Of a stretch of 64,000 nucleotides of DNA, positions 5,800-63,049 are shown piece after piece; positions within the stretch are counted from its first letter, which is position 1, and each line of letters begins with the position of its first letter. The notes under the pieces are model-generated. The model saw only the letters and a program-made list of their open reading frames with translations, was not told the origin of the DNA and did no database searches. The position numbers and the translations under genes were made by a program. The DNA comes from Mobula hypostoma (Eukaryota), in NCBI RefSeq assembly GCF_963921235.1, contig NC_086103.1, positions 9,114,001 to 9,178,000 of the forward strand, read 5' to 3'.

Positions 5800-8247
5800 C
5801 TCATTACTTGCATTGCAGCTGTAGATCTCAGAGCTTACCCTTCCTGCACTTTCTTTCGCAAGAGTTGCTTGCTCTGCACAGGAATTTTCTACAGGTGGTC
5901 CACGTTTGTGCGGGGCCGTGAATTCTTTCTTTTCGGACTGCAACGTTGAACACGACTCGTAACGGAAACTCTGAGAAAGTGGATCACCTCCAAATACCTC
6001 AATATAGTTCGGTGGTATATGAAGGCTTCTACTGGCCTTTTGAGTTCCATTTAGGAAATTCCTTGTTTTCCAACAGCAACAGATACTCGGAGAGCTGTAA
6101 TGGCACCACATTCCATTTCTGTTATTATAAACATTGATAGCAAGGATAATTAAAATTACTAGAAAAATAACAGATGTCGTTCCAAATGTTATGACCAAAT
6201 AAAGATTCAGATCAGGGAAGAACTCACGATCTTTACTTAAACTGGTAGCACTGGTGATCGTTTCGGCCCCTGCCATAGATATTACTATAGTTACTGTGGC
6301 TGAGAGTGAGGGCCTTCCATTATCTTTTACAACAATTACCATTCGTTGTTTAGAAGCGTCCTTCCTTTGTATACTACGGATAGTCCAAACTTCACCAGTG
6401 TCCGCTGAAATAGTAAACAAATCGCGATGTGTAGCCTGAAAAATGTGGTAAGATAGGCGGGCATTCTGACCAGCGTCGGCGTCAGTGGCTGACACTTTGA
6501 CCACGAGGTATCCAGGTTCAGCAAACCTGGATATTGTCTCCATTACTGTTGACCCATACTCGGGTAGAGGATGCACGATCACTGGGGTATTATCGTTCTC
6601 ATCAAGGATAACAACATCGATTGTAACGTTACTGCTGAGGGCTGGGACTCCAGAGTCCTGCACCTGAACTTGAATCTGGAAGCTTTTCAATTTCTCGTAA
6701 TCAAACGATCTTTGAGCAAAGATGACACCACTCTTTGAATTGATGGAGACAGACGAGGCGACAGATAAATTCAGAATAGTAAATTTCAGTAGGGCGTTCT
6801 GCCCAGTATCTGGATCGAAGGCTGTTAGAGAGAATATGGAACCCCCAACAATGTTGTTCTCCATAATATTTGCCGTGTACCGAGACTGTGTAAAACTTGG
6901 AACATTATCATTTACATCTGAAACTTCCACGCGGATTGTTTCCTTAGAGGTGAGGGGAGGATTCCCTGCATCTCTACAGGTTACAGTAATGTCATACCTA
7001 GAGATAGTTTCGCGATCCAGCTCATGTTGTATCAGCAGTTTCCAATTATTCTTCACCGGGGAATCTAACTTAAAGGGAACTTTATTCGGAATTTGACATT
7101 GCACTTGCCTATTGTGCCCGGAATCCTTATCTTCTGCATTGAGAAGGGCGACAATAGTTCCCACTGGGGCATTTTCTGGCACAGCATTCGACATGGATGT
7201 CACCGTAAGTTCAGGAGCGTTGTCATTCACATCGATTAAATCCACCAGCACATCGCAGCGCCGAGACATTGCGGGTTGACCATTATCCACTGCTTGAATA
7301 TTGATTACAAAAGTCTTTCTTTGTTCATAGTCCAAGTGATCTTGCAGTCTAATTTCACCAGTTTTGGAATTCACACGTACTAACGCACGGACCTCAGCTG
7401 AATTATGGCTGCTGAGGGCATATGTTATCTCTCCATTTGTACCATCGTCCAAATCAGTGGCGTTTAACGTGATAATCAGCGTTCCTATGGGAACCGATTC
7501 TAACATATTGACCTTATAAACTGACTGTGAGAAAACAGGAGAGTTGTCATTCGTATCCTTCACTATGATTATTATCTGTGCAGTGCCTGATCTCACCGGG
7601 ACTCCGCCGTCTTCAGCAAGTAGCGTTAACTGATGCGTCGATATCGTTTCTCTGTCCAAACCCCTCTGCAGAACTAACAACGGTAACGCTCCTATTCTAT
7701 CGCGTTCTTCTATGTCAAGAATGAAATATTCATTGGGAAGGAGCTGATACGTCTGCAAGGAGTTAGCTCCAATGTCCGGATCGTGCGCGGTATCGAGGGG
7801 GAATCGCGCTCCCGGTGCCATCATCTCTGAGATTTCCAGTCGGATCTGACTGTTGGGGAAACTGGGAGCGTTATCATTTACATCGAGAATCTCCACTTCC
7901 ACCTGGTGCAGACCGAGGGGATTTTCAAGCACAACGTTAAATGATAAAACGCATTCGGTGCTCGGCCCGCAAAGTTGTTCCCTGTCGATATTTTCATTCA
8001 CAAACAAAATCCCGTTCTCCAAATTAACGTCAACATACCGTTTCCTCCGATTGGGCGACACCCGCAATCTACGAGCTGACAGCTCCTTTAAATTTAACCC
8101 CAAATCAATTGTAATATTCCCAACAAAGGCACCCAGTTGCAATTCCTCGGGAACAGAATAACGAATCTGGCCACTAACAAAATCCAAACGGGTAAACAAA
8201 CAGCAGAAGAGCTGATATTTTACTAACCAGTGTATATTATCTCTCAT
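5800..8247 (-). CDS. Clustered protocadherin variable exon V1 (subfamily A), 816 codons to the splice donor; unspliced ORF runs to 5695
   Basis: Signal peptide, QIRYSVPEE start of EC1, C-x5-C in EC1, six DxNDN/DRE/AxDxG repeats, TM helix, cytoplasmic PPNY motif; phase-0 donor GAG|GTGAGT with GT at 5799-5798. Confidence 0.96.
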
Positions 8248-8419
8248 TTCCAGGACAAATCATTCCAATGGTTTCGACCCGAGACAATGCCTTTTCACAG
8301 CGGTTTATTTAACTGGGAGCAATGCGATGCAGAAAATATTTGTACGTTTTTTATATTTCCTCTATTTTTTGGATTGCTATTTTCTCATTTTTCTCCAATT
8401 CGAAACGAGCCGTGTGTAA

Positions 8420-8650
8420 ATCCTCCGGTGCTGCCTGGTATCCTGTTTTTACGGCGTCTGATCATACGTGATGGCGGCTGCGTGTTGAAGGGGGCTGTGC
8501 GGATCACCACTTGCAGCTCAGCTTCTGATTGGTGAACGGTGCAGCTTTCATATCTGGCCAATTAGAATTCAGCTAATTTCTTAAAGCAAGTGATATTCCA
8601 TTTGGCGCAGAGTTGTTACATTTAAGAGTGCACAATTGAAATTAATTTCA
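8420..8650 (-). promoter_or_regulatory. Conserved promoter of V1
   Basis: Blocks shared with all seven paralogs: GTCTGA, ATGGCGGCTG, GGGGCTGTGCGGATCAC, ATTGG 8528-8532, CCAAT 8558-8562, TTTCTTAAAGC, GCACAATT. Confidence 0.8.
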
Positions 8651-10420: not shown

Positions 10421-11383
10421 TAAAGAAATGTGAATGCACAAGGAAATAACAGCATGACAAATCCCTTGTATTGCTAAGACATACCTCACTATTTATTAGA
10501 AACTTGTGAATGAGCTATACATACGTTGGCTGTCACAAGATGCATATTTGGCTTCTATGGTGTTTTAGCGCTTTCGGTACACTTTAGCCACTAAAAAGGA
10601 GGCAATCAGAGTCTTGTTGGAACAATCTCTGTTAGACTGATTACGTAACGCCGATAGTATATGCAGAGTTAATTAATGTCAAAATCGACACTCTGGCTCA
10701 GTAGCAGATAATTTAGATTCAATACATAGTTTAGATACTAAATAATAATCCAAAATATTTTGAGATACTGATCATCTCAAGCAGCCCTGATGGAGACAAA
10801 CTGAAACATAGTATTCCGGAATGATCACCCTACATCAAGGTTCGATTTAAGGTCATTGAACGAAACGTGGACGCTTGATTCTCGCTCCACAGATGTTGCT
10901 GTAATTTCTGTACATCAAGCTCGTTTTGATTTCCGCTTTTCAGCGGCGGCATGATTATTTCCTTCAGCTTTTAAATACAAGTGACTTTAAAAAACCGAGA
11001 AGAACTGTTACTCTCCAATGACGTGCTCACAGTAGGTTACGCTCAGCGGTATGCTCCTGGGTTTCGCCAACAGATCTAAAGTATGACTGTAGTAAATGTG
11101 GAGCAGTTTAACCTCCCTCGCCCCCCCCCCACCTCCCCGCCACCAAGAACTGCGATTAACCTCACTTGAGAGAAGACTGTGGGCTTCCAGGACTTTGTGG
11201 AGCAACGCATTGGAATTACATGCAATCCTCCAGAATTCTGAACAGTTAAATAAAAAAATATGCACGACAGGTAGGGTTGCGAATCATGAACCAATAATAC
11301 TTTGACGGAGAGTTCAAGCAGTCCCAGGATATACAATGGCCAGAAAATCAAAACGACTTACTTTCTTTTGCGAATTAACTCAC

Positions 11384-13816
11384 CTCATTTCGCGTATTGC
11401 AGCTGTAGATTTCAGAGTTTACCATTCCCGCACTTCCTTTCCCAAGAGGTTTCTGCTGTGCATAGGGAATATCTGTAGACGCTCCACGCTTGTGGGGTGT
11501 CGGGAATTCCCTCTTCACTGACCGCAAAGTTGAACATGACTCGTAACGGTAGCTCTGAGAAAGTGGATCTCCTCCGAACACCTCAACATAGTTAGGCGGT
11601 ATCTGAAGGCTTCTACGAGTTTTTTGAGTTCCATTTAAGTTCCTTGTTTCCAAACAGTAACAGACATTATATTGGCATCTAATTCCGTTACTGTTATTAT
11701 GAACTTTAATAGCAAGGATAATTAAAATTATGAGGAAAACGATAGATGTTCCTAATGCGATGACGAAGTAAAGGTTCAGTTTAGGGGAGAACTCGCGATC
11801 TTTGCTTAAGCTGGTGGCACTGGGGATCTTTCGACTTCCTGTCACAGATATTGCTATGGTTACCGTGGCTGATAGTGAGGGTGTTCCCTTATCTTTTACG
11901 ACAATCACCAGCCGTTGTTTTGTAGCATCCTTACTTCGAATACCACGGATAGTCCAAATATCACCAGAGTCTGCAGAAATCGTGAACAGATCGGGATGGG
12001 TAGCTTGAAAAATGTGGTAAGACAGATGGGCATTCTGACCAGCGTCGGCATCAGTAGCAGAGACCTTGACCACAAGATATCCAGGTTCAGCAAACCTGGA
12101 TATTGTCTCCATTACTGTTGACCCATACTCCGGTAAAGGATGTATAATCACCGGGGCGTTATCATTCTGATCAAGGATAACAAAATTAACAGTAGCGTTA
12201 CTGGCGCGGGGTGGGACACCGGAATCCTGAACCCTAATGTATATCTGGAAGTTTTTTAACTGCTCGTAGTCAAAGGATCTCTGAGCAAATATGACACCAC
12301 TCTGCGAGTTAATGGAGACATACGAAGCTACGGATGAATCCAGGATAGTAAAGTTCAGTCGGGAATTCTGTCCTGTGTCTGGATCGAAAGCTTTCAGGGA
12401 AAATATGGAGTCCCCAATAACGTTGTTCTCCATAACATTTACCGTGTATGCAGGCTGCGTAAATCTTGGCGCATTATCATTTACATCTGAAACTTCCACC
12501 TGGATAATTTCCTTAGCTGTGAGGGGTGGACGCCCTGCATCTGTGCAAGTCACCGTAATGTCATACCTAGAGGTAGTTTCATGATCCAGCGCATGCTGAA
12601 TAAAGAGTCTCCAATTGTTTTTCACAGGGGAATCTAACTTAAAGGGAAGATTATTCGGAATTCGACATCCGACATGCCCATTTTGCCCAGAATCCTTATC
12701 TTCCGCACTGAGGAGGGAGATAATGGTTCCCACTGGAGCATTTTCTGCCACGGCATTTGACAGGGACGTCACTGACAGCTCTGGAGCGTTGTCATTAACA
12801 TCGATAACACCCACAAACACATCACAGTGCTGGGGCATTGGGTAAGGGCCATTATCGATTGCTCGCAGATTAATCATAAGTGCTCTGCTTTTCTCATAGT
12901 CCAACGGTCCTTTTAGTTTGATTTCACCAGTTTTGGAATTCACACCAACTAATTCGCGAACCGCAGCTGAGTTATGGCTGCTGAGGGAGTACGTTATCTC
13001 TCCATTCGGGCCATCGTCCAAATCAGTGGCGTTTAACGTAATAATCAGAGTTCCTATGGGAGCTGATTCCAGCAGATTGACCTTATAAACCGACTGGGAG
13101 AAAACAGGAGAGTTGTCATTAGCATCGTTCACTGTGACTGTTACCTGGGCAGTGCCAGATTTCGCAGGTACCCCGCCGTCTTCAGCAAGTAGCGTTAACC
13201 TATGGGTCGATATCGTTTCCCTGTCCAATGCCCTTTGCAATACCAATACTGGGAACTTCCCTATACCATCGTGTACTTGTACGTCGACAATAAAATATTC
13301 ATTGGGAAGGAGATGGTATGTCTGCAAGGAATTAGTTCCAATGTCCGGATCTTGCGCGGCCTCGAGAGCGAATCGCGCTCCCGGTGCCATAATCTCTGAG
13401 ATTTCCAGTCCGGTCTGGCTTTCAGGAAAATTGGGAGCGTTATCATTTACATCGAGAATCTCCACTTCCACCTGGTACAGACCGAGGGGATTTTCAAGCA
13501 CAATGTTGAATGATAAAACGCATTCGGTGCTTGGCCCGCAAAGTTGCTCTCGGTCGATTCTTTCATTCACAAATAAAATCCCATTCTCCAAACTGACGTC
13601 AACATACCGCTTCCTCGGACTGGGCGCCACCCGTAATCTGCGAGCCGACAGCTGTTTTAAATTTAACCCCAAATCAAGCACGATATTCCCAATAAAAGCA
13701 CCTACTTGTAATTCCTCGGGAACAGAATAACGAATCTGGCCACGAACAAAATCCAAATGGGCAAACAAACAGCAAAACAGCTGATATTTCACCAACCAGT
13801 GTATATTATCTCTCAT
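11384..13816 (-). CDS. Clustered protocadherin variable exon V2 (subfamily A), 811 codons to the donor
   Basis: Six cadherin repeats, TM and VCD in ORF 11375-13816; phase-0 donor GAG|GTGAGT with GT at 11383-11382. Confidence 0.96.
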
Positions 13817-13989
13817 TTCCAGGAGAAATCATTCCAATAGTTTCGACCAGAGACAAAGCCTTTTAGCAGCGATTTAGGCAAATGATAATTTGCGATGCGG
13901 AAAACACCAGCCCCCTTTTTACGATATTCTCTGTTATCTGCATTGAAATGTTCTTACGTCGTCTCCAATTTGAAACGAACTGTGTATAA

Positions 13990-17883: not shown

Positions 17884-19113
17884 TCGCATTTTCACAAAAT
17901 ACTGGTTTGACAACTTAAGTGCTATAGTTATGACGGATTTTTGTTGTTCCTCTAGCCTTCTGAAAATTGAAAGCCACAAATCAGTTTTTTGCTTGAATAT
18001 TTAATATCTACCCGAATATCTAACTGTGTCATTACACATAACACTCAATACCATTCAACGCAAAACCTTCATCCTGATTAGCAGTACGGAAAAGTCATTC
18101 CACTGCAGAATTCGCTAGCCTAACTCAACTTTCTCCCAGACCTGGCCAATAAAGGAATGTAAATGAACTAGGCAGGAACTGCACGGCAACGTCCCATGCC
18201 CTACTAAGACATACCTCTCTATGTATCAGCAACATTTGAAATTGCCGCATGCATACATTGGCTTTGATAAGAGACCGTATATTTTGATTCTGTGGGCTTT
18301 GGGAGCTCTCCGTAGACCTTCACCAATAAGAAGGAGGTACTCAGAATCTTGTTGGAATATATTCTCTTGCATTAAACTGGCAACTCCCTGAGCATAGAGA
18401 GTTCCATAACGCCTAGTACGGAAGGTCTAGGCTCATTTGTAGCAGATAATGTACTGTGGATAATTTAGATACGAATTAAGGAACCAAAATGTATTGAAAT
18501 ACTCATCTTGTCAAGCAGCACCGCCGAAGAGAAAACCAAATATAAATTTACAGACTGATCAACTTACATCGAATTCGAATTTAAGGTTAACGGCTGGAAA
18601 CGTGCAGCCTTGCTTCTCGCTTCTGAGATGTCGCAGCAATTTTTGCATTACGTACAGTATTTACGCTTTGCAGCACCTACGTGCCTCCACGCCCCCACCC
18701 CCCAGATTTGAAACACGTGGCGACCGTCGGAATCTGGGAAAAACTGCTGCTTTCAACGGAAGCGCTCAGAACAAGGATGTTCACCAGTTTACTCGCAGTT
18801 TTTGCACGATACTGAAAATATAAAGTGTAGGGAATATAGACAAGTTTTACCTCACACAGACCACTACGATAAACGTCAATTGCGATAGCAATTCTTTACA
18901 GAATCACGTGAGCTTCCGGGATCTGGTGCAGTAATGCGATGACAATATATTTAATGTTGAAAGAATTCAAATAGATTAAAAGGAATATATGGAAATTAGG
19001 CATTTGGCTCAAAACCACTATGCACAAAATGCTTTGACCTAGATAATAATTCCGGCCCCTTAAGCGCATTCGCCCTAAATTCCAAAACTATTTTTTTTTG
19101 CGAAGTAGCTCAC

Positions 19114-21546
19114 CTCGTTCTTTGTTTTGCAACTGTAGACTTCAGAGTTTAACATGCCAGGGTCTTCTTTCACTATGGATTTCTTTTGGCTGCAGGGAAC
19201 GGATGAAGATGGTCCGTGCGGGGTTGCAAAGTCTCTCTTCATGGTCTGCAAAGTCGAACACGACTCGTAACGGAAACTCTGGGAAAGTGGATCACCTCCG
19301 AATACTTCGACATAGTTCGGAGGTATCTGAAGGCTTCTACTGGCTTTTTGAGTCCCATTTAGAAAGTTGCTTGTTTCCAAACAGTCACAAACATCGCATT
19401 GGCATTCCATTCCGTTTCTATTATTATGAACTATAATAGCAAGAATAATTAAAATTACGAGCAAAATTATAGATATAGACCCTAACGCTATGACTAAGTA
19501 AAGGTTTCGTTTGGGAGAGAACTCACGATCGTTGCTTAAGCTAGTGGAGCTGGAGATCGTTTCACTTCCTGACACAGATATCACTATGGTTACTGTGGCT
19601 GAAAGCGAGGGCGTTCCGTGATCTTTTACGACAATCTCAAGTCTTTGCTTAGAAGCATCCTTGCTCTGAATCGCTCTGATAGTCCAAATTTCACCGGTGT
19701 CTGCTGAAATAGTGAAAAGATCACGATTGGTAGCCTGAAAAATGTGGTAAGACAGCCGAGCATTCTGACCAGTATCGGCGTCAGTAGCCGAGACCTTGGC
19801 AACGAGATATCCAGGTTCAGCAAACCTGCTTATTGTCTCCATTACGGTTGACCCATACTCGGGCACAGGATGCACGATCACCGGGGGATTATCGTTCTGA
19901 TCAAGGATATTAACATTGATTGTAGCGTTACCGGCCAGGGGTGGGACTCCAGAATCCTGAACCCTAATATATATCTGAAAGTTTTTTAACTGCTCGTAGT
20001 CAAAGGATCTCCGAGCAAATATCACACCACTCTGCGAATTGATGGAGACATACGAAGCTGCGGATGAATTCAGGATAGTAAAGTTCAAGCGGGAATTCTG
20101 TGCCGAGTCTGGATCGAATGCGTTCAGAGAGAATATGGAATTCCCAATGGCGTTGTTTTCCATGATATTTGCCGTGTATGTAGGCTGTGTAAAGCTTGGG
20201 GCATTATCATTTACATCTGAGACTTCCACATGGATCGTTTCCTTTGATGTGAGGGGAGGGCTCCCTGTGTCCATGCAAGTTAGAGTGATGTCATAACTCG
20301 ATGTAGTTTCGCGATCCAGCGAACGCTGTATAAGCAATATCCAACTGTTAGTTATGGACGAATCTAACTTAAAGGGAAGTTTATTTGGAATTTGACATTG
20401 TACTTGCCCATTTTGCCCAGAATCTTTATCTTCTGCGCTGATAAGGGCGACAATAGTTCCTACTGCAGCATTTTCTGCTACGGCATTTGCACTGGATGTG
20501 AAGGTCAGCTCGGGAGCGTTGTCATTCACGTCCATTACATCCACCAGCACATCACAGTGTTGGGACATCGTGGGATGACCATTATCGATTGCTTGAATAT
20601 TAATCATAAATGTTCTTTGCTGTTCATAGTCCAACCGTCCTTTCAGTCTGATTTCACCAGTTTTGGAGTTCACGCTAACTAAGTCGCGAACCTCAGCTGA
20701 ATTATGGCTGCTGAGGGCGTATATTATCTCTGCATTTCGACCATCGTCCAAATCAGTGGCATTTACCGTGATAATCAGTGTTCCTGTGGGAGCCGATTCC
20801 AAAATATTGACCTTATAAACCGACTGCTGGAAAACAGGAGAGTTGTCATTCGCATCGCTCACCGTTATTGTTGCCTGGGCCGTGCCCGATTTCACAGGGA
20901 CTCCGCCGTCTACGGCAACTAGAGTTATCTGATGGGTCGATATCCTTTCTCTGTCCAAAGCCTTTTGCAGCACCAATAACGGGAACTTCCCTATACCATC
21001 TCGTACCTCTGCATCAAGAACAAAGTAATCATTGGGAAGGAGCTGGTATGTCTGTAAGGAGTTAGTTCCAATATCCGGATCGTGCGCAGCTTCAAGGGGA
21101 AATCTCGCTCCCGGTGCCATAATTTCTGAGATTTCCAGGCGTATCTGGCTTTTAGGGAAACTGGGAGCATTGTCATTTACATCGAGAATCTCAATTTCCA
21201 CCTGGTGCAGAGCGAGGGGATTTTCAAGCACAACATTGAATGTTAAAACGCATTCGGTGCTCGGCCCGCAAAGTTGTTCCCGGTCGATTCTTTCATTCAC
21301 AAATAAAATTCCATTCTCCAAATTTACGTCAACATACCGACTCCTCGGACTGGGCGCCACCCGCAATCTTCTAGACGGTAGCTGCTTTAAATCTAACCCC
21401 AAATCAATTGCGATATTCCCAACAAAGGCACCCAGCTGTAATTCCTCGGGAATAGAGTAACGAATCTGCCCAGAAGCTAGATTCCAACGACAGAACAAAG
21501 AGCAAAACAGTTGGTATTTCAATAGCCAGTTTATATTATCTCTCAT
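19114..21546 (-). CDS. Clustered protocadherin variable exon V3 (subfamily A), 811 codons to the donor
   Basis: ORF 19075-21546 with six cadherin repeats, TM and VCD; phase-0 donor GAG|GTGAGC with GT at 19113-19112. Confidence 0.96.
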
Positions 21547-21719
21547 TTCCAGGAGAAATCATTCCAATGGTTTCGCCCGGATGCGAAATCTTTTTTTTAT
21601 TGCGGTTTCAATTATAACGGATAAATTCATGCAAAAAATATCTGTACCTTTTACCAAATTTACTCTTCTGTTTCTATTGAAATGCTCTCATATTGTCTCC
21701 GGTTTGAAACAAGTAAAGG

Positions 21720-31081: not shown

Positions 31082-31757
31082 TAAAACAAAAGTGTCTGGT
31101 GGAAGTGCTCAGTTAACCATCCTACATTAGGTAGGTTTGCAAGAAATTGTTGAGCTACATACCGAATTCAAAGATTAGAATATGCCTGGATGGAAGATTA
31201 GATGGTATTCTTCGACAATACGCAAAACTTCGTTCAGAGCTCAGTGTAGTGGAATGCAGAATAAAAGTGAAGAACGCCTGTAAGCTCGTGACACTGGAAA
31301 GGACTTAAGTGAAGAACTGTGCACTCATTCTACGTTAATATACCCCATGGTAGAGGAGACCAAAAAATGAGCTCAGAGCACAATGTATCAGATTGGAAGA
31401 ATTATAAAGAAATTGTACACTCAACTGGAAAAACTGTTCCAGGCTTAAATACTAGTATGTTACCAACTGATTTGGAGGAAAGAATGTTAGGAAGAAGAAT
31501 TACACAAACTTCTAAAAACCAGGTCTTCTAGAAAATAATTTAAAGTTATTTGGGAATATATCGGAATTATATATAATAATCATCATTGAAAACATCACAC
31601 TAGACAGAAAAGTAATCTAGAAAGATTTATCAAAGAGTATTTCCCGTTAAGCTACATCGTTCATACTATTTATCTTAATAAACTGGTACCCATCTAAACT
31701 GCTTGTAATTTCAAGCCAAACCTATCAGGTTTTTCAGTCTGGTTCAAATTGCCTCAC

Positions 31758-34217
31758 CTCAGGAATGCTGTTTTTTTCAGAATCCTCCATTGCAATATTT
31801 CCTTTACTGACAGATTCGTTCAGAACAAAGTTCTGGTCTGCACATGACCTGTTCCTGCTGGAGAGTGTGAAATCCCTTTTGGTAGACTGCAATGTCGAAC
31901 ATGACTCGTAACGGAATCTTTGGGAGAGAGGATCGCCCCCAAACACTTCAACATAGTTTGGTGGTATCTGAATGCTTCTACTGGCCTTTTGAATTCCATT
32001 GAAACTATTTCTTGTTTCGAAGCAACAAAAGGAGCTCAGGTAGTGATGCTGGCAGACCGCACCTTTCCTGTTTTTGTGAACTTTAATGGCGAGGATGATT
32101 AACATTATAAGGAAAATGCTAGATATTATTCCCAAGGCTATAACCAAGGAAAAGCTCAGTTCAGGAGGGACTCTGGGATCCACCGAAGAACTGCTGACCC
32201 TAGAGAACGTTTCAGTATCAGTCCCAACCACAGATAATACAATCGTCACAGTGGCAGAAAGTGGTGGTATTCCATTGTCTTTTACCACAACCACTAGTCT
32301 TTGATTAGGGGCATCCCTGTTCACAATTGGACGGATAGTCCAAATTTCGCCAGTCTCTGCCGAAATGGTAAAAAGATTATGATGTGTGGCTTGAAAAATC
32401 TCATAAGAGAGTCGAGCATTCTGACCCGAGTCTGCATCGGTGGCTGATACCTTGACAACCAAGGACCCCGGTTCACTGAACCTGGATATTGTTTCTATTG
32501 CTGACGACCCGTATTCGGGTAAAGGATGCACAATCACTGGCGCATTATCATTCTGATCCAGGATAACAACGTTCACTGACGCATTGGTCGTGTGAGGTGG
32601 CGTACCAGAATCCCGCACTTGAACTTGAATCTGGAAGTTTTTCAATTGTTCATAGTCAAAAGATCTCTGAGCATAGATAACACCACTTTCTGAATTAATT
32701 GAGACATAGGAGGTTGTTGAGAAATTGTGAACTTGAGAGTCCAAGATAGAAAAGTTCAGTCGGGCGTTCTCTCCAGCGTCTGTATCGAAGGCCGTCAGTG
32801 AAAATATAGAGGACCCGATAACGTTGTTTTCCATAACATTTGCTGTGAATACTGGGCGAGAAAACCTTGGTGCGTTATCATTTACGTCTGAAACCTTTAC
32901 TCCGATGGTTTTCTTGGAAATGAGGGGAAGGTCCCCCGCATCCGTGCATGTAATAGTAATATCATACCTGGGATTGCTTTCGCGGTCGAGCGGGTGCTGT
33001 ACAAGGATTCTGTAGTAGTTCTTTAAAGATGAGTCCAGCTTAAAGGGTAGTCGATTTGAAATTTGACAACGCACCTGACCATTTTTTCCAGAGTCTCTGT
33101 CCTCTGCAGTAAACAGAGCCACTACACTGCCAAGCGGAGCATCTTCCGAAACAGTCGCAGAGGAAGACCGCAATATCACCTGCGGTGCGTTATCATTCAC
33201 ATCAATCACTTCAACAAATACATCACAGTACTCGGGAACAGCGTTAGAACCCTTATCTGTCGCTTGTATTTTTATCTCAAAAACGTTGCTTTCTTCGTAG
33301 TTCAGGTTCCCCTTCAGCCTGATTTCACCAGTTTTGGAATTCAGATCAAAAAGTTTACGAGCAGTCGAAGAGATATGGCTACGAAAAGAATACACTATCT
33401 CTCCATTGAGGCCATCGTCTAAATCAGTTGCGTTCAATGTAATAATCAGGGTCCCTTTTGGTGCAGATTCCAATAATCTGACTCTGTAAACCGACTGGGA
33501 GAAAACAGGCGCGTTGTCATTAACATCCTTCACTGTTACTATAATTTGCACTGTGCCCGATCTCGGAGGCAATCCGCCGTCTTCTGCCGTTAACGTTATA
33601 CTATGCGTTGCCAGTGTTTCTCTGTCCAAAGGTTTCTGTAACAACAATACTGGCCACTTGCTCTTTCCACGTCGTGTTTGTACGTCCAGACTAAAATAGT
33701 CATTTGATTGTAAACGGTAGGTTTGTAAGGAGTTTGTCCCAATGTCCGGATCGTGTGCTGGTTCAAGAGGAAAGCGCATTCCGGGTCCTGCAAGCTCTAT
33801 AATTTCAAGATGAAGCTGGCTTTTCGGGAAACTGGGGGCATTATCATTTTCATCGAGAACCTCCACTTCCACCTCGTAGAGGCTCAGGGGATTTTCAAGC
33901 TCAATTTCCAACGATAAGCGGCAATCGAGATTCGACCCACAAAGCAGTTCCCTGTCGATAATTTCTTTCACAAATAAAGTTCCATTCCGTACATTTACGT
34001 CGAAATACTGCTTCCGTGGACTGGGCGCTATCCGCAATCTGCGAGACCACAGCTGCTTCACATCTAAACCTAAATCGGCTGCGATTTTCCCAACAAAGGC
34101 TCCCGGTTGGAGTTCTTCAGGAACAGAATAACGAATTTGACCGGACACAATATTCGACAGCCAGAACACGCAGAGCAGCAATTGGCATTTTAGCAACAAA
34201 TATACTTTGTATCTCAT
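31758..34217 (-). CDS. Clustered protocadherin variable exon V4 (subfamily B), 820 codons to the donor
   Basis: ORF 31734-34217; six cadherin repeats, TM, VCD; phase-0 donor GAG|GTGAGG with GT at 31757-31756. Confidence 0.96.
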
Positions 34218-42600: not shown

Positions 42601-42890
42601 TGGAGGAAAGAATATCAGAAAGGAGTAACCATACCTCGAAAAATCAAGGCGATGTCAAGAAAGGTTTGTAACTCTTTGGCATTATATTAGAATTATATAT
42701 CATTTTTGTCTGCAAAACATCACACGAGACAAAAAAAAAAGTAATGTCAAACAGATTTAACAATGAGCGCAGTGTTTCTCTTTAGTACACGATTCACCCT
42801 GTTTATCTTAATATACTGGTAGCTATCCAAATTCTTGTGCTTTCCAGCAAAACTTTAAAGATTTTCGCTCTCTGTTTTAAATGACCTTAC

Positions 42891-45350
42891 CTCAGGAACG
42901 CTATATTTTTCAGAATCCACCATTGCAACATTTCCTTTACAGGCAGATTCGTTCAGAACAAAATTTTGGTCTGCAGAGGATCGACTGTTGATGGATACGG
43001 TGAAATCCCTCTTGGTAGACTGCAATGTCGAACATGACCCGTAACGGAATCTTTGTGAGAGAGGATCGCCCCCAAATACTTCAACATAGTTTGGTGGTAT
43101 CTGAAGGGTTTTACTGGTCTTCTGTATTCCATTCAAAGAGTTTCTTGATTCAGAGCAACAACAACTACCCAGAGAACGGTGCTGGTATACCATCCCTTTC
43201 CTGTTTCTGTGAACTTTAATGGCTAGTATGATTAACATTATGAGGAGTAAGCTAGATATTATTCCCAAGGCTATAACCAAAGAACGGCCCAGTTCAGGAA
43301 TGCTCCCCGAATCTGCTGATGAGCTACTGACACCGTAGAACGATTCACTATCAGTCCCAACCACAGATAATAATATAGTCACGGTGGCAGAAAGGGATGG
43401 TATTCCATTATCTTTTACCAAAACCACCAGTCTCTGATTAGAAGCGTCTCTGTTCAATATTCGACGGATAGTCCAAACTTCACCAGTGTCTGCAGAAATG
43501 GTAAAAAGGTTGCGATGTGTGGCTTGAAGAATCTGATACGAGAGTCGAGCATTCTGACCCGAGTCTGCATCGGTGGCAGAGACCTTGACAACCAAGGAGC
43601 CAGATTCGGTGAACCTGGATATTGTTTCTATTGCTGACGACCCGTATTCGGGCAAAGGATGCACAATCACTGGTACATTATCATTCTGATCCAGGATAAT
43701 AACGTTCACTGACGCATTGGTCGTGTGAGGTGGCGTACCAGAATCCCGCACTTGAACTTGCATCTGGAAGTTTTTCAATTGTTCATAGTCAAAAGATCTC
43801 TGAGCATAGATCACACCACTTGCTGAATTAATTGAAACATAAGAGGTTGTTGAGAAATTCTGAACCTGAGACTCTAGGATAGAAAAGTTCAGTCGGGCGT
43901 TCTCTCCAGCGTCTGTATCGACGGCCGTCAGAGAAAATATGGAAGCTCCAACAACGTTGTTTTCCATAACATGTGCTGTGTACACTGGGCGAGAAAACCT
44001 TGGCGGGTTGTCGTTTATATCTGAAACCTCTACTCGGATGGTTTTCTTAGAAGTGAGGGGAGGCTCCCCTGCATCCGTGCATTCAATAGTGATATCATAC
44101 TTGGGGTTGTTTTCGCGGTCGAGCGGGTGCTGCACGATAGTTCTGTAATAGTTCTTTAAAGACGAATCCAGCTGAAAGGGCAGTCGATTTGAAATTTGAC
44201 AGCGTACCTGACCATTTTGTCCGGAATCTCTATCCTCTGCAGTGAACAGAGCCACCACACTCCCAAGCGGAGCGTCTTCCGAAACAGTCGCAGAGGAAGA
44301 CCGCAATTTCACCTCCGGTGCATTATCATTTACATCGACAACTTCAACCAATACATCACAGTATTCAGGAACAGCGCCAGGACCCTTATCCGTCGCCTGT
44401 ATGTTAATCTCAAAGACGTTGCTTTCTTCATAGTCCAACTTCCCTTTGAGTCTGATTTCACCAGTTTTGGAATTCAGATCAAAAAGACTGCGGGAAGTCG
44501 AAGACATATGGCTACGGAAGGAATACATTATCTCTCCATTCAGCCCATCATCCATATCAGTAGCGTTTAATGTGATAATCAGAGTCCCTTTTGGTGCAGA
44601 TTCCAATAATCTGACTCTGTAAACCGACTGGGAGAAAACAGGCGTGTTGTCATTAACATCCTTCACTGTTACTACAATCTGCACTGTGCCCGATCTCGGA
44701 GGGAACCCGCCGTCTTCTGCCGTTAACGTTATACTATGCGTCGCCATTACTTCTCTGTCCAAAGGTTTCTGTAACAACAATACTGGCCACTTGCCCTTTC
44801 CACGACGCATTTGTACGTCCAGACTAAAATAGTCATTTGATTGTAAACGGTAGGTTTGTAAGGAGTTTGTGCCAATGTCCGGATCGTGCGCAGGTTCAAG
44901 AGGAAATCGCATTCCGGGTCCTGCAAGCTCTATAATTTCAAGATGAAGCTGGCTTTTCGGAAAACTGGGGGTATTATCATTTTCATCGAGAACCTCCACT
45001 TCTACCTGATAGAGGCTCAGGGGATTTTCAAGCACAATATCCAAGGATAAGCGGCAGTCGAGATTCGACCCACAAAGCAGCTCCCTGTCGATAATTTCTT
45101 TCACAATTAAAATCCCATTCTCCAAATTTATGTCGAAATACTGCTTACCAGGACCGGGCGCTACCCGCAAGCGGCGAGCCGACAGCTGCTCCACATCTAA
45201 ACCTAAATCGGCAGCGATTTTCCCAACAAAGGCTCCCGGTTGTAGTTCTTCAGGAATAGAGTAACGAATCTGACCATACACCATGTCCAATAGGCAGAAT
45301 ACACAGAACAACAATTGGCATTTCAGCAACCAATATATTTTATATCTCAT
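42891..45350 (-). CDS. Clustered protocadherin variable exon V5 (subfamily B), 820 codons to the donor
   Basis: ORF 42855-45350; phase-0 donor GAG|GTAAGG with GT at 42890-42889. Confidence 0.96.
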
Positions 45351-45539
45351 TTCCAGCGGAAGTCATTCCAAATGTTATAGGCCCAGGCAGTATTACGTAT
45401 TATCCTTTCTGCAGTGCATAAGTGATAAACAGTGTGTGAGAGAGAGAAAAAGAAACGATACAGAATAGATCCGTACCGCTTGGCAATCGCTCGAATTATA
45501 TCAATGAAATGGTCGTATTTCTTTACAATGTGAGAGGAC

Positions 45540-45760: not shown

Positions 45761-45861
45761 TTTTAGCCTGTGGATATCTATTTTCTGTTCTTTTTACAGT
45801 TCTACTGATCCGAGTTATCAGTATCTATGTTCAGATTAATGTATTAAAGGGGAAGTATAAA

Positions 45862-51491: not shown

Positions 51492-53205
51492 TGATCTTTC
51501 GTTCATGGCACGAGAAACCCATTTGTGTAAAAAGCCAGAGCTACAGAAACGGCGACAGAAACTCCAAAAACTCCTCTTCGGAAGAGAGTTAGAACCTTCG
51601 TCTAAATGGGCTATATCTGGGCAAAGACTGGGCCAGGACAGAGGAATCCGGCGAGTTGCTTTCGGTTGGCTATGCCCCAGTAGGGGCGATGGGCTTAAGT
51701 TTAAAAAGTGTCATTATAATCACAAGCAAGACTCCAGAAAATGCGCACGAGCGGACTGACACCACATTGACCGTGATTATTCAAGAAGATGGTCATGTTA
51801 GTCATGGCATTGAAGCAGACTATTTCGCCCATCGGATCCATATCATATCTATGAGCAAATTAATATTTACATTAATTATATTTACCACGACTGGCTCTGC
51901 GGTCTTCCGTGGTTTGTGTCATTCAAGTGCTCACAGAGATATTGGTTAATTGTTGCCACGTACCTATTTCCACCACCCACCCAAGCAATGCATTTCAAAT
52001 TCCTAACTTCCTTTGAGTGCAAAAAAAAGGTCTTCTTTACATTCTGGCTCAGCTTCTTTGACATTTCCGTAAACCAATATCTTCGGCAGTTCTGTTATGG
52101 GGAAAATGTTCTTACTACCTACACAGTTCGCCTTCCACTTATTTGCATAAATCTCAAAGAAGCCCCCACCCTCGCCCAGCCTGCTCAATTCCAATGAAAA
52201 TATGCCCAGACTCTTCAGTTACTTGTTAGGACTGAAACTCTCTGCCTCAGGCAGCTTTATGTTGAAATTTGTGCTGCCACCTTGAATGTCACTCGACTTG
52301 TTTGCTAAGGTCACCATCTTTCACTATATTCTGTATGGTATTACCATTTATTTTGTCGACCCTGCCTTTACTGGTCGACTCAATATGCATCGCCTTGAGT
52401 AAATTCAAATTGCCATTGCTCCGCCTCATTAATGTATTCTCAATATCAAATGTAGATAAAAATACGACCCCGGTCTTATTCGGTGAAATATCCTGCGACT
52501 GGTCATTAGTCAATCAAACTACAGTATCTGGATTCGAAACACATTTCCCTAATTCCAGTTGTTCTGCCCAATTCCACAACTTGAATGATTGTTTAAATGC
52601 AATCATACTGAGCACAGGAGTCGTTCAAAACTTCTTACGGCGGGTGGAGAAATGTGTTAACGTTTCAGTATGAGCATTTTTCATCGACTTCTTTATCGGT
52701 CTAGAACGTTAGCTCTAATTTCTCCCAACGTGGAGGTTGCTGAGAATGTTCCTACTTCCTCGTTTTATTTCAGGTATCTTTGATTTCCGAATACAACGAG
52801 TGAATAAATCTCGTGTGACCGAAAAGCGGCACCAAAACCATTTTGCTCATACCTAACCAAGGGGTTTAAGCAACCAAAACATTTTTTTTTCTTCAAAGGC
52901 AGTGTTCATAGTGCCTGGAACATACTTATTCAGTAATTTACTACAAGTTAATTTTAACGCAATTTGTTATCACAATAAATTCTAAACGGCCTAGAACCTC
53001 CCCCCACACAGCCTCTCACAGAGAGATCAAGCAAGTGAAACAATCCCATTAAGCAATTAGAATATTATTCGATCACTGCGTCCACACTGAGATTGTGAGC
53101 GTAACATTAATTTCATCATAGTACAGTGATCACAATGACCCAAATGTTTGCATGATAATCAAATTAAATAGTTAACGATTTCGATTCTCTTCAGTAACTC
53201 CTCAC

Positions 53206-55668
53206 CTCAGTGCTTACATTGTAATTGCTCTCCTCTGGCTTTATCATTCCTGCATTCTCTTTCGCAACAAACTTCCGCTGGTTGTAACGCATATCTGTAG
53301 ACAACCCGCAAGTTTGCGGGATCGCGAGGTCTCTCTTCACAGACTGCAACGTTGAACACGACTTGTAACGGAAACTCTGGGAAAGTGGATCACCTCCGAA
53401 TACCTCAACGTAGTTCGGTGGTATCTGAAGGCTCCTGCTGGCCTTTTGAATTCCATTCACAGAATTCCTTGATTCCAAACAGCAACAGGTAGTCAGAGAA
53501 CTGTATCGACATCCAGCACCGTTTCTTGTTTTATGAACCTTAAACGCTAGGATAACCAAAATAATTAGGAAAATCAGAGAAGTTGTTCCTAAGGCGATGA
53601 CCAAGGAGAAGTTCAAATCGGGCGCAAAATCGTCCTTTTTAGGTAAACTGGTTGCACTGGACATCGTTTGGCCCCCTTTCACAGATAATAATATGGTTAC
53701 AGTTGCAGAGAGCGAAGGCGTTCCATTATCTTTCACGACAATCATCAGCCTTTGTTTGGAGGCATCCTTGTTCTCAATACCGCGGATAGTCCAAATTTCC
53801 CCTGTATCCGCTGAAATTGTGAACAGATTGCGATGAGTGGCTTGGACAATCTGATAAAATAGACGAGCATTCTGACCGGCATCGGCGTCAGTAGCAGATA
53901 CCTGGACAACGAGGTGTCCAGGTTCAGCAAACCTGGATATCGTCTCCATTACTGTTGACCCATATTGGGGCAAAGGATACACGATGACTGGAGCGTTGTC
54001 GTTCTGATCAAGGACAACAACATCTACAGAGGAGTTGCTGCAGAGGGGCGGGGTTCCAGAATCCCGCACCTGAACATAAATTTTGAATTTTTTTAATTTC
54101 TCGTAGTCAAAAGATTTCTGAGCATATATGACACCACTTTGTGAGTTGATGTAGATATAAGAGTCAATAGAGAAATTCTGAACATGAGATGGCAGGATGG
54201 AAAAGTTCAGACGGGCGTTCTGTCCTATGTCGGAGTCAAAAGCAGTTAACGAGTATATAGAAGCCCCAATAACGTTGTTCTCCATGACATGCGCAGTGTG
54301 TACTGCTTGTAGAAATCTCGGAGCGTTGTCATTAACATCTGTAACATCTACTCGAATCGTTTCTGTGGACGTTAGATTAGGATACCCTGCATCCGTACAT
54401 GTTATGGTAATGTCATACCTGGAAGCAGTTTCACGATCCAGCGATTGCCGTATAAGCAGCCTATAAAAGTTTTCTACAGACGATTCGATTTTAAACGGCA
54501 GTTGGCTTGATATTTTGCATTGCACTCGCCCATTTTGTCCAGAATCTTTGTCATTTACGCTGAGTAGTGCCACTATTGTCCCAACTGAGGTATCCTCTGG
54601 CACTGCACTTAACGTAGACGTTAACTTCATGTCAGGAGCATTGTCATTCACATCGACAACATTCACCAGCACATCACAGTGCTGTGGTATCGCGTAAGGG
54701 CCATTATCGACTGCTTGTATATTAATCTCAAAAAAATTATTTTGTTCATAGTCCAAGTGTCCTTTCAATCTGATTTCTCCGGTTTTTGAATCGACACTAA
54801 ATACTTCGGGAATATTTTTAGAACTGTGGCTGCTGATGGAATACGTGATCTCTCCATTTGGTCCGTCATCCAAGTCCGTGGCGTTTACTGTCATGATGAG
54901 GGATCCTAATGGAGCCGTTTCCAACAGACTCACGGTATAAACGGACCGCGAAAAAACAGGAGAGTTGTCATTCGCATCCTGCACTATGATTGTTATCTCG
55001 GCCTTGCCCGATTTCATCGGAACTCCGCCGTCTTCGGCTAAAAGCGTTAACTGGAGACTGGTTACTGTTTCTCTGTCTAAAGGGCTCTGCAACATCAACA
55101 CCGGTAGCTTCCCTTTCCCACTGCGCTCCTGTACATCAAGAATAAAATATCGATTGGAAAGGAGCTGGTATGTTTGCAAGGAGTTAGTTCCAATATCAGG
55201 ATCGTGAGCGGCCTCGAGGGGGAATCGCGCTCCCGGTGCCATAATTTCTGAGATTTCCAGGCGCATGTGGCTTTCAGGGAAACTGGGAGCGTTGTCATTT
55301 ACATCGATAATCTCCACTTCCACCTGATACAGACCGAGTGGATTTTCAAGTACAACATTCAAGGATAAAATGCAATCGTTGCTCGGTCCGCAAAGTTGTT
55401 CCCGATCGATTCTTTCATTCACAAATAAAATCCCATTCTCCAAATTTACCTCAACATACTGCTTCCTCGGGCTGGGCGCCACCCGCAATCTGCGAGATGG
55501 CAGCTGCTTTAAATCTAACTCCAAATCAATTGCGATATTTCCAACAAAGGCACCCAGTTGTAATTCCTCGGGAACAGAGTAACGAATCTGCCCAGAAGCT
55601 AGATTCCAACGACAGAACAGAGCGCAAAACAGTTGGTATTTCAACAGCCCGTTTATATTATATCTCAT
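53206..55668 (-). CDS. Clustered protocadherin variable exon V6 (subfamily A-like), 821 codons to the donor
   Basis: ORF 53191-55668; phase-0 donor GAG|GTGAGG with GT at 53205-53204. Confidence 0.96.
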
Positions 55669-55844
55669 TTCCAGGAGAAATCATACCAATGGTTTCAACC
55701 GAGACAATGCCTTTTAACGGCGATTTAATTTAGATGGGACAAATATGACGCTGAATATATCTATACCTTCTTCGAAATTGCAGTAATATTTTCATGTAAA
55801 TGTTAACATGTTGTCTTCTATTCGAAGTAAATCGCACACAGACC

Positions 55845-58130: not shown

Positions 58131-60402
58131 CTCTACGTGTCGTCTAAAAACTCACGAATCAAAGCAATTACCAGATCAATATTTCGTTGCTGGATGTATA
58201 ACTCATTTCGAAAACTTAACAATATTCTGGACAAATCTTCCAACTTAATTCGTAGTACATAATATTTGTTAGACAATCTCCCAGTCCACAGTAGCATGTA
58301 GAGCAATATACAACCATTCAGGAGAATGCACAATACTCCTATTACGTGCTTACGAAGAGACAATAGACTTAGAGCACCAGGATAAATATGCCACATTTCC
58401 CTGACTAAAAAATATACCGTTGCCTCTTCATAATTATAGAGTCAAAAACTCTAGGACTCACTCAACGACCCTCAAATGTGAACATCTTTATCATAATGAC
58501 TATGGTTGGTCAAAAAAGCATTCACATCTACGTCCCAAGGAGAATTATCTATGAGGCAAAAGAGAAGAACAGTCTTCGTGATCCATTTCCAAACCCAGAA
58601 GACAAATATGCATATTTCTATTGGCTTGACAGTAAGAAAATTCTGGACATTCAAATGTTAAACCGTGGCATCGAAACCTGTTAAAGTGTTTAGACCAGAA
58701 ATTAATTATTCTGAAGACAAGCGCTCTGTACTTACGTGGTTACTTGCATGAATATAATGTCTTGCAATTCGTAGAAGACAATGCGAAGATCAAATAAAAC
58801 TTTTAAAAGGCTTCCAATAAGGACATCCCAATGCATCTTGCAAACAATATTTTGAGGTATTATCATGTCATCACTGTTGCAGTTCGGGAAATACAATATC
58901 CAGCTTGTGTGTAACCAGTCCACTAAACTACAGTCGGATAGTGATCAGAAACAGCTTTAAAAACACTATTTTTCTGTCGATCATTTTTCTGCTTCTTTTC
59001 GAGAAAGGGTGTCAACGTTTAATCATGCTCACCTCAAAGAAGAAATGGTGCATGGAAGAGAGATCGAACGTAAAAGATGTTACCTCGAATGCCATTGTTT
59101 TCGCAACATTTGCCTAGATATTTTTATTGGCACATATGTCTTGATTAAATTTTAAACGAATTTAAACGCTGAAAAAAAAGAAGCATGGAGATACTCAGCA
59201 GGGAACATAACATTCATTGAGAGGGGGAGCAATATTTATGTTTTGGGTCGATGACTTTATATTGGAGAAGATGATGAAACAGCCATTTTAGGTTTATTAT
59301 GTTTGAGGTGGGTGATCGACTGGGAAGTAAAATGATAAGAGTTCAGGATAGCTCAGTGATTGCAACCAAAAGTTGTTCACGTGCTAGCAAGACATGCAGA
59401 AGCGGCAAGGTTTCAAATGGAGACCATTAAACTTTGGAAGAACAACTGAGGAAAATTCACAGGAATAAATGTGATGGAACTGGGAAAAACTGCAGACATG
59501 GCTCTCTTGAAATCTGAAATAAAAGAGTGCATAGGATATAACCAACATATCAAGCAGCATCTATGGAGAGAGAAAAAACTTGAGTTATACAGCTGCAGAT
59601 AAATGTTTCTAGATAAATATTGATACGGCGCATGTAATACAAAAGTACAGCATGAAGAATAATTCATTGAACTGCATAATGAGTAACAAGAGCTAAATCA
59701 TGTAGGAATGAAATATATGGTTTATTCCCCCGTTAAGGTTAAGTTTCTTAGGAATAATGAAGTTATACAAAGTCAGAACTAGTGTACAATGCATAAGTAA
59801 AGAGAACGACATCTGGGGCTAAGACACCTCTAGAGACTAATCACGAGAATTTAAAACGGGTATTAAACAACGATATTAAAATTGAGTCTTGATTCAGGTT
59901 TTGATTAGAAACTTTGACACTTTATTTGCTCCCACAGATTCATCTTGAACACTGAGTTCTTCCAACAGATTGTCTGTTAACAGGAAGTATTTTTCAATGT
60001 GGTCACTCAAACTACATTCATATTTGTCATTTTAAATGAAACCACATTGCGAGCACGGAATACAATGCACTAGACTGGAAGGAGAATGTGAGAATTGCTT
60101 TTTACCGGGAGGAATGTTTGGGTATAAGAACGGGTGTATAATCTACTGACCTATAGCTAAGTATGGTATTAACAGGGATTAAAACGCCTCTAAAAATATG
60201 AAAAGTATGGAAAACATTGCTGTATCTAGGACATAATATGGTGACATAGTTACTGACCCATAAAACAAACGATAGTATCTTTTGGAAATAGAATGGTTAC
60301 ACAAAATAAGATTCCCACACGGTATATGATGATAATGTGGTAGCACACCTGTACACAAACAGAACATTTGAAGATTATATTCTCTGCTTAAAATTTCCTC
60401 AC

Positions 60403-62862
60403 CTGGGCCACACTGTATTTTTCAGACTTCACCATTTCATTGTTTTCTTTCACGATAGTTTCGCTAAGCACATAATTCTTGTCCGCAGATGTTCTACATG
60501 TGTTGGGTACGACGAAATCCCTCTTGTTAGACTGCAATGTCGAACATGACTCGTAACGGAATCTCTGAGAGAGCGGATCGCCCCCAAACACTTCAACATA
60601 GTTCGGTTGTATCTGAAGGTTTTTACTGGCCTTCTGAATTCCATTCCAAGAATTTCTTGATTCAAAACAACAACAAGTACCCAGGGAATAGTGCCCGTGG
60701 ACCATGCCATTCCTGTTTAAATGAACTTTAATGGCAAGGATGACTAAAATTATGAAGAGAATGCTTGATATTATTCCCAAAGCTATAACCAAGGAAAGAC
60801 TCAGTTCAGGTGTGTACCTCGGATCTGAGGACGAGCTGCTGACGCTTGGAAATGATTCAATATTTGTTCCAACAACAGATAATACTATAGTCACAGTGGC
60901 AGAGAGTGATGGGATTCCATTATCCTTTACGACCACCACCAGCCTTTGATTAGAGGCATCCCTGTTCAGAATTCGACGGATAGTCCAAACTTCACCAGTG
61001 TCTGCGGAAATAGTAAAAAGATTATAATGGGTGGCCTGAAAAACTTGATAAGAGAGTCGAGCATTTTGACCAGAGTCGGCATCGGTTGCCGATACCTTTA
61101 CAACCAAGGATCCAGGTTCTGCAAACCTGGATATTGTTTCTATTGCTGTTGGCCCGTATTCGGGTAAAGGATGTGTAATCACCGGAGCATTATCATTCTG
61201 ATCAAGGATAACCACGTTCACTGAAGCATTATCTTTCAGCGCTGGCTCCCCAGAATCCCGCACTTGAACATGAATCTGGAAGCTTTGCAATTGTTCATAG
61301 TCAAAAGATCTCTGAGCATAAATGACACCACTCGAAGAATTAATTGAGACATACGATCTTATTGAGGAATTATGAACCAGGGACTCAAAGATAGAAAAGA
61401 TTATTTGAGCATTTTCGCCTACATCTGAATCAAAGGCTGTCATAGCAAATATGGAAGTCCCAACCACGTTGTTCTCCATAACATTCGCTGTGTATACAGA
61501 GCGAGAAAACGCCGGTGCGTTGTCATTTATATCTGAAACCTCTACTCGGATGGTTTTCTTAGAGGTGATTGGAGGGTCTCCCGCATCCGTACATGTTACA
61601 ACAATATCGTATTTTGATGTGTATTCGCGATCCAATTGATTTTTCACAAGAATTCTGTAATAGTTCTTTATAGAGGAATCTAAATTGAAAGGCAATTGCT
61701 TTGGAATGTGACATTGTACTTGACCATTTTGTTCGGAATCACGGTCTTCTGTACTGAAGAGAGCCACGACTGTCCCAAGTGGTGCATCCTCAGAAACAGT
61801 GGCTTGCAATGATCGCAAATTTACCTCAGGCGCGTTATCATTCACATCGATAACGTGAACCATTACCTCACAGTACTCGGGAACAGCGCCAGAACCCTTA
61901 TCCATCGCCTGTATGTTAATCTCAAACGCGCGGTTTTTTTCATAGTCCAAGTTCCCTTTGAGTCTGATTTCACCTGTTTTGGAATTCAGGTCAAAGAGCT
62001 CACGAGAAGCGGCAGAAATATGGCTACGGAATGAGTATAATATCTCTCCATTGAGGCCATCGTCCAAGTCAGTCGCGTTCAATTTGATCACCAGGGTTCC
62101 TTTCGGTGCAGATTCTAACAGACTGATTCTGTAAACCGGCTGTGAGAAAACAGGCGCATTGTCGTTAAAATCCTTCACTGTGATTATAATCAGAGCAGTC
62201 CCTGATCTCGGCGGCAAACCGCCATCTTTAGCTGTTAACGTCACATTGTGCGTTGGTATCGTTTCCCTGTCCAAAGGCTTCTGTAACAATAACACTGGCC
62301 GTTTTCCCTTCCCGCTACGCCTTTGCACGTCCAGTGTAAAATACTCATTTGGTTCTAGCTGGTAGGTTTGCAAAGAGTTTGTGCCAATGTCAGGATCGTG
62401 CGCGGGTTCAAGAGGAAATCGCATACCCGGTGCTGCAAGCTCCATGATTTCAAGGCGAAGCTGTCTTTTCGGGAAACTAGGAGCATTATCATTTACATCC
62501 AGGACCTCCACTTCCACCGGGTGCAGGTTTAGGGGATTTTCAAGCACAACTTCCAACGATAAGCGACAATCGGGATTCGACCCACAAAGGAGTTCTCTGT
62601 CGATAATTTCTTTCATAAATAAAATCCCATTCTCCAAATTTACGTCGAAATACTGCTTCCCAGGACCGGACCCTATCCGTAAACCTCGAACCGACAGCTG
62701 CTTCACTTCTAAACCTAAATCGGCTGCGATTTGCCCAACAAAGGCTCCTGGTTGCAGTTCTTCAGGAACAGAATAATTGATCTGACCAGATACAACATCC
62801 CACCGGGAGAACGCACAGAATAATAATTGCAAATTTACCAGCCAATATATTTTATATTTCAT
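60403..62862 (-). CDS. Clustered protocadherin variable exon V7 (subfamily B), 820 codons to the donor
   Basis: ORF 60388-62862; phase-0 donor CAG|GTGAGG with GT at 60402-60401. Confidence 0.96.
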
Positions 62863-63049
62863 TGCCAGGATAATTCATTCCAATTGTTTCATGCCCCGAT
62901 TATTTCCTTCATTTTCCTGTGGAGCAGTGAGCCGGCGTTAAATAGAACAAAATAACTACACAAAGAAACTCGTACCTTTTACGTATCTCAAAAAAAATCA
63001 TTCGTATACTCGCATTTTGCTTAAATTTGGAAGAGCATTACTGCCGAAA

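Follow-up and report, generated by a model that had tools for sequence, protein, structure and literature searches.

A conserved upstream ATG at the start codons of nu-like clustered protocadherin exons in sharks and rays

Overlapping uORFs and clustered protocadherins

An upstream open reading frame (uORF) that begins in the leader and ends inside the main coding sequence has its textbook example in uORF2 of ATF4. Expression of clustered protocadherins, on the other side, is understood almost wholly as promoter choice combined with chromatin looping. In this study, we describe a stretch of 64,000 nucleotides from Mobula hypostoma (contig NC_086103.1, positions 9,114,001 to 9,178,000 of the forward strand; the whole stretch is called the window, and positions are counted from its first letter) that contains seven variable first exons of a protocadherin array, V1 to V7. 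Each of them has an additional ATG (uATG) 16 nt upstream of the main ATG and out of frame with it. This uATG lies inside the mRNA and, judging from its pattern of change in an alignment of related exons, is under purifying selection across sharks and rays.

Out-of-frame overlapping uORFs are typically repressive and are passed by leaky scanning (PMC10275272). The arrangement found here resembles repressive members of this class, such as ATF4 uORF2, in its out-of-frame leader AUG, an ORF ending in the main coding sequence, a purine at -3 and conservation beyond the neutral level. It differs from ATF4 uORF2 in the short distance of 16 nt between the two AUGs, over which delayed reinitiation cannot discriminate between them; an ATF4-like mechanism of this kind is unlikely here, though short upstream uORFs occur in these leaders. 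Compared to the class as a whole, the uORF is a predicted one, it shares no more than 9-14 nt with the main ORF, and the module is common to a tandem array of paralogous first exons instead of belonging to a single gene.

The closest described genes are those of the protocadherin nu subcluster of the elephant shark, Callorhinchus milii (B0YN86-B0YNA1), for which PMC2926608 cites Yu et al. 2008. They show 58-61% identity to the proteins of the window and fall with them in one clade (support 100/98), and one of two nu exons of this chimaera has an ATG in a similar sequence, ATGTTTGGACGGTGGCGATG. In that exon, however, the ATG is at -17, not -16, and opens a 29-codon ORF, and the neighbouring nu exon reads GGG in place of the ATG. 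Mammalian clustered protocadherin promoters provide a further comparison. The window shares with them a conserved block for each exon (here with CCAAT boxes, at about -370 to -190), RNA that starts just 3′ of this block, and splicing to shared constant exons; here, however, the promoter block is separate from the conserved island that holds the uATG.

Our literature search gave no description of uORFs in clustered protocadherins, and the papers found that mention both "protocadherin" and "uORF" concern other topics. The element would thus appear to be of a known kind, a conserved overlapping uORF, in a gene family for which no report of one was found. If this reading is correct, a start-codon competition module predating the split of sharks and rays, and perhaps that of chimaeras, would add a translational layer to clustered protocadherins. 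Because paralogues exist in which the ATG is lost, shifted by one base, or followed by a changed uORF stop, the family offers a clean natural experiment. The impact is limited, as neither mammals nor teleosts possess the family and the mechanism is a textbook one.

The upstream ATG in the window, in RNA and in related exons

All seven variable exons are on the minus strand, as are the features described for them below, and the uATG was present at -16, out of frame, in every one. In six exons it opens a uORF of eight codons whose stop lies at +9 to +11 of the coding sequence. These uORFs encode MICPGNER* in V1 (8237..8263, within the RNA contig 8144-8487), MISPGNER* in both V2 (13806..13832, seen in RNA contigs spanning 13809-14013) and V3 (21536..21562), MTSAGNEI* in V5 (45340..45366), MISPGNEI* in V6 (55658..55684, where the context is GGTATG, without a TEAD core) and MNYPGNEI* in V7 (62852..62878). 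The overlapping uORF of V4 (34117..34233) lacks the usual TAA because main codon 3 is TAC and not TAT, and it extends to 38 codons; all sampled words of its region -215..+30 were found in RNA run X1. Our coordinates and peptides are the same as those in a preliminary description of the window, which had also noted the invariant spacing and the exceptional V4.

A G is present at -3 of the uATG in all seven exons, and the sequence ATGA places a TGA in the main frame. The position following the uATG (+4) is never G, which makes its context adequate and not optimal, and the surroundings of the two start codons are nearly alike (G-n-A-AUG at the uATG, G-A-A-AUG at the main ATG). A 22-nt motif, GNWATGNNTNNNNCTGGMAATG, occurred only at the seven starts in the 64 kb, against a chance expectation of 0.66. 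Seven of seven within a single paralogous array is a count of non-independent cases, and the real test is the tree across species.

The exons themselves form seven ORFs of 813-850 aa arranged head to tail: V1 (5695..8247, 850 aa, start at 8247), V2 (11375..13816, 813 aa, start at 13816), V3 (19075..21546, 823 aa, start at 21546), V4 (31734..34217, 827 aa, start at 34217), V5 (42855..45350, 831 aa, start at 45350), V6 (53191..55668, 825 aa, start at 55668) and V7 (60388..62862, 824 aa, start at 62862). Their N-termini are signal peptides of the form MR(D/Y)(N/K)I..., such as MRDNIHWLVKYQLFC... and MRYKIYWLLKCQLLF..., followed by GQIRYSVPEE. The nearest relatives are batoid and shark models named "protocadherin ...-like" (60-79% identity), the best named ones are the elephant-shark nu protocadherins, and the Pfam families found in these relatives are Cadherin_2, Cadherin and Cadherin_C_2. 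In the protein tree, every exon that carries the uATG belongs to the clade that includes the chimaera nu exons. The large variable exons in tandem, the splicing to a constant exon and the membership in the nu clade identify V1 to V7 as variable first exons of a clustered protocadherin array of the nu-like subfamily.

To place the uATG in transcripts, contigs of four public RNA runs were aligned to the part of the window from 8100 to 14099. For V1, a contig of run X1 matched positions 8144-8487 without a difference, extending from the coding sequence as far as -240, and a second contig from a slightly diverged organism (run X2; 8226-8448) reached -201, so that the RNA-covered leader of V1 spans 8248..8487. 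For V2, two runs covered 13809-14013, up to -197. In the V2 contig the exon sequence stops at 11380, at the splice donor AATGAG|GTGAGT (window 11378-11385), and 16 of the 19 letters with which the contig goes on match the first constant exon of Pristis (L003:22769; QPNTDWRLSQ, preceded by a 3′ splice site); the V2 contig is thus spliced mRNA, joined to the constant exon. Depth was zero in all four runs at the intergenic stretches 8700-9699 and 10500-11299, so that DNA contamination and uniform read-through can be excluded as sources of the signal. The mRNA thus has a leader of about 200 nt that includes the uATG, a point that the preliminary description had left to be checked and that is settled by collinear RNA contigs reaching -197 to -240; these are contig ends and not mapped 5′ ends.

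We compared the window with loci of the sawfish Pristis pectinata (L001, L003 and L004), the sharks Chiloscyllium punctatum (L002) and Rhincodon typus (L005), Callorhinchus milii (L007) and the teleost Danionella (L006); the sample contains no skate, lamniform or squalomorph sequence. Among 22 related exons of the four elasmobranchs, including those of the window, 20 had the ATG at -16, one had it at -15 and one had lost it. By species, it was at -16 in all seven exons of Mobula, in nine of the ten of Pristis (L001:10001 reads AGG), in both of Chiloscyllium and in two of the three of Rhincodon, one of these two being a degraded exon remnant; in the third Rhincodon exon a 1-nt deletion places the ATG at -15 (ATG CAT TGA). 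All four exons of the Pristis L003 subfamily kept it despite a protein identity of only about 58% to V1; three of them have 9-codon overlapping uORFs and one has a 4-codon uORF with its stop at -4..-2. In 19 of the 21 elasmobranch exons in which the ATG was kept, at either -16 or -15 and with V4 and the Rhincodon remnant included, the uORF overlaps the main ORF. The conservation of an overlapping uORF that had been proposed thus holds for the ATG itself and only in part for the overlap, which is broken in two exons, with the ATG lost in a further one.

No such ATG was found in two other exon types of the chimaera, and none of five Danionella exons had an ATG within about 90 nt of the start. 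With these limited outgroups, the uATG appears to be confined to nu-like protocadherins of cartilaginous fishes and not general to clustered protocadherins, and the cluster-wide scope once suggested for it has to be narrowed accordingly. Homology of the chimaera ATG with the elasmobranch uATG is plausible. In the simplest history, the uATG would have arisen once, at the base of the nu family, and later been lost twice and shifted by 1 nt twice.

The Rhincodon remnant (L005:36755-36790) is an observation in its own right. It retains about 68 alignable residues at 38% identity, and still has the ATG at -16 with an intact uORF encoding MFHTGNEI*.

Rates of change were estimated by counting parsimony changes on a tree of 21 elasmobranch exons, with 48 four-fold degenerate sites of the same exons, chosen for invariant first and second codon bases, as the neutral reference. 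The four-fold sites had on average 5.75 changes, and none of the 48 had one change or fewer. The three columns of the uATG had 0, 1 and 0 changes; in its flank, the G at -3 had none and the A at -1 had one. Leader columns at -18, -13, -12, -9, -8 and -7 had 3-6 changes and are thus nearly neutral. No other leader triplet is conserved as well as the uATG, which is surpassed only by the main ATG. Gene conversion is ruled out as the cause, because it would have homogenised the four-fold sites and the intervening leader bases as well. An ATG no better conserved than nearby neutral bases had been named as the result that would speak against function; the comparison gave the opposite outcome.

The in-frame stop formed by ATGA, to which attention had also been drawn, is not kept outside the species of the window: sharks have ATGT and the Pristis L003 exons have ATGC, and we rejected this stop as the cause of the conservation. 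A consequence is seen at L003:6330 and L003:13556, where the C after the uATG removes the in-frame TGA and stop-to-stop ORFs run 30 and 18 codons, respectively, upstream of the homologous start through additional in-frame ATGs. Such extended ORFs could mislead gene models, the products of which have 1063 and 1007 aa.

Alignment of the region -400..+150 of the exons divided the upstream region into three zones, for which identities are given between Mobula and Pristis. A promoter-like block at about -370 to -190 precedes each of the seven exons (identity 0.71-0.86) and contains the CCAAT boxes ATTGG and CACCAATCAG, the C-rich motif GGTGATCCGCACAGCCCCCTTCA and the initiator-like motif TCAGACGCCGTGAAAAC. 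In V1 this block is at approximately 8437..8617, with the CCAAT box present twice, the C-rich motif once and TCAGAC as the initiator-like sequence; immediately on its 3′ side are the ends of the RNA contigs from the second organism. The middle zone, -180..-37, is weakly conserved (0.45-0.70). It is followed by an island at -36..-1 whose identity of 0.77-1.00 equals or exceeds that of the coding sequence (0.72-0.90); in V1 it occupies 8248..8283 and has the consensus GAAAC..TTGgAATG..TT...CTGGAAATG, and the other six exons have the same island, +1..+36 beyond their start codons. The earlier statement that the upstream region aligns poorly therefore describes the middle zone well, at about -150 to -40, and does not extend to the promoter-like block. 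A second uATG in the context aaATGagaa was partly conserved at -141..-153 of V1 (8388), V3, V4, V6 and V7, where it opens uORFs of 1-5 codons.

Proposed start-codon competition and alternative explanations

Competition between two start codons by means of an overlapping uORF is, in our opinion, the best reading, and we give it an even chance of being right. It fits the finding that the uATG and its G at -3 are kept, that +4 is never G, and that the main ATG is preceded by an invariant G-A-A in the 21 elasmobranch exons. Under this model, the upstream AUG is the first that scanning ribosomes would encounter. Some of them would initiate there, translate 8-9 codons in the wrong frame and terminate 9-14 nt into the sequence coding for the signal peptide. 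These ribosomes would have passed the main AUG and would yield no protocadherin. Protocadherin would come only from ribosomes that leak past the uAUG, perhaps with a few that step back after terminating. With the AUGs 16 nt apart, a ribosome on one would also occlude the other. The result would be a low translational yield for every isoform, dependent on the stringency of start-codon selection and independent of promoter choice. Forward reinitiation would be unproductive, since the next AUGs downstream are mostly out of frame. Both initiation at the uATG and a lowered protein output are predictions of this model.

Several results weigh against this reading or limit it. The T at -11, the CT at -6/-5 and the AAAC at -27..-24 are as invariant as the ATG itself, and a uORF does not need them. 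Overlap is not obligatory, given that the uORFs of Pristis L003:13610 (stop at -4..-2) and Rhincodon L005:10001 (ATG CAT TGA) end before the main AUG and that of V4 has 38 codons. Of 21 exons, 19 have the T that forms the TAA, where a background of about 0.54-0.61 would be expected, in a comparison of non-independent exons; because this T persists where the uATG is lost or shifted, the TAA may be a by-product of the conserved residues Y/D-K/N. Pristis L001:10001 and Callorhinchus L007:15725 have an intact ORF and no such ATG. Each leader has 1-5 additional uATGs, all with ORFs that stop before the main ATG, so the uORF at -16 is not the sole barrier to scanning. Finally, the ends of RNA contigs are not transcription start sites, and a minority of transcripts may start downstream of -16.

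Because -11, -6, -5 and -27..-24 are invariant beyond what a uORF needs, the island may also, or instead, be a protein-binding site. In this alternative, which we regard as possible without expecting it, the 35-nt island would be recognised in a sequence-specific manner, either by a transcription factor bound to the DNA some 180 bp 3′ of the start site or by an RNA-binding protein on the leader, and the ATG would be kept as part of the motif; such a site may coexist with the uORF. The invariant or nearly invariant positions (-27..-24, -21, -19, -17, -11, -10 and -6..-1) are interleaved with free ones in a manner that looks bipartite, the island includes an imperfect direct repeat (TGGAATGA / TGGAAATGA), and its motif is confined to the seven start sites; these points speak for a binding site. 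However, the ATG survives 1-nt indels that move it to -15 or -17, which a rigid bipartite site would tolerate poorly, the invariant G at -3 of the uATG and the G-A-A before the main ATG are what start contexts require, and by inspection alone the conserved bases matched no motif. The particular factors first proposed as a competing explanation, TEAD and a reverse CCAAT box, can be set aside. Six of the seven window exons do read ATTGGAATG on the sense strand, as expected for a TEAD/MCAT site (CATTCC) over a reverse CCAAT, but V6, Pristis L003, Rhincodon and Chiloscyllium have other bases in place of the GG of GGAATG and of ATTGG while the ATG stays. Specifically, the G at -18 is present in 17 of 21 exons, V6 has GGTATG, and Pristis L003 and Rhincodon have GAAATG or GCAATG. 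The exons of Chiloscyllium, Rhincodon and Pristis L003 have no ATTGG, and as an NF-Y site this pentamer would be about 180 nt downstream of where the RNA begins, not upstream.

The direct repeat could also have a historical meaning. Its copies are 16 nt apart, and the uATG might be a functionless by-product of an ancestral duplication of the start region, carried along by descent and gene conversion; all carriers belonging to one protocadherin clade, and the intact ORFs of the two exons without the ATG, are consistent with such an origin. We consider this most improbable. On the same tree the ATG has changed once in total, as compared to a mean of 5.75 changes at four-fold sites and none with one or fewer, homogenisation cannot explain selective retention when the leader positions between the two ATGs are near-neutral, and the ATG is kept in lineages as distant as sharks and rays. 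A uORF that is translated without repressing, either because ribosomes move back after termination and initiate anew at the main AUG or because the 8-residue peptide is itself the product, appears very unlikely. Among the 21 intact exons with an upstream ATG, 18 have the stop 9-14 nt from the main AUG, and limited retrograde movement has been documented for stop/start pairs within about 20 nt, mostly in viral RNAs (PMC10275272). However, a structured element like TURBS is required in those cases, whereas conserved structure was not found here; moreover, the arrangement is broken by V4 and by the two non-overlapping uORFs. As for the peptide, residues 2-4 of the uORF vary freely, which makes a micropeptide unlikely and agrees with a uORF acting independently of its peptide.

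A structural role for the leader RNA gained no support. RNAalifold predicted no pairs in 21 sequences, single folds of three of four exons were like those of shuffled sequences (Z of -0.4, -1.2 and +2.2; the fourth had -4.9), and Rfam gave no matches in the window. A hairpin sequestering the uAUG was considered in view of a partial palindrome in clade A, GAAACCATT-GG-AATGATTTC, and was rejected because it is not kept in other clades.

Returning to start-codon competition, the translational dampener proposed in the preliminary description is upheld in part, in that the uATG is in the mRNA and selectively kept; ribosome initiation and a change in output are its predictions, and the other invariant bases of the island are left unexplained by it. 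More speculatively, the module could serve as a family-wide translational gate. Here the fixed pair of AUGs, 16 nt apart in matching contexts, with the upstream frame ending shortly after the main AUG and specific to an ancient chondrichthyan family, would have its yield set, and perhaps regulated, by eIF1/eIF5 stringency or by local signals in neurites, and the extra invariant bases would dock a factor that tunes the choice of AUG. We offer this extension tentatively and would not bet on it. If true, such a gate would act equally on every isoform, on top of stochastic promoter choice.

Intergenic observations

Two further features were observed between variable exons. ORFs unrelated to cadherins, possibly derived from mobile elements, were present in Pristis (L001:28571, minus strand, 590 aa) and Rhincodon (L005:21858, minus strand, 408 aa). 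In the window, the V1-V2 intergenic segment at 9700-10400 was covered at very high word depth in each of the four RNA runs, with values up to about 1400 and many joints and loose ends, and looks like an expressed dispersed repeat.

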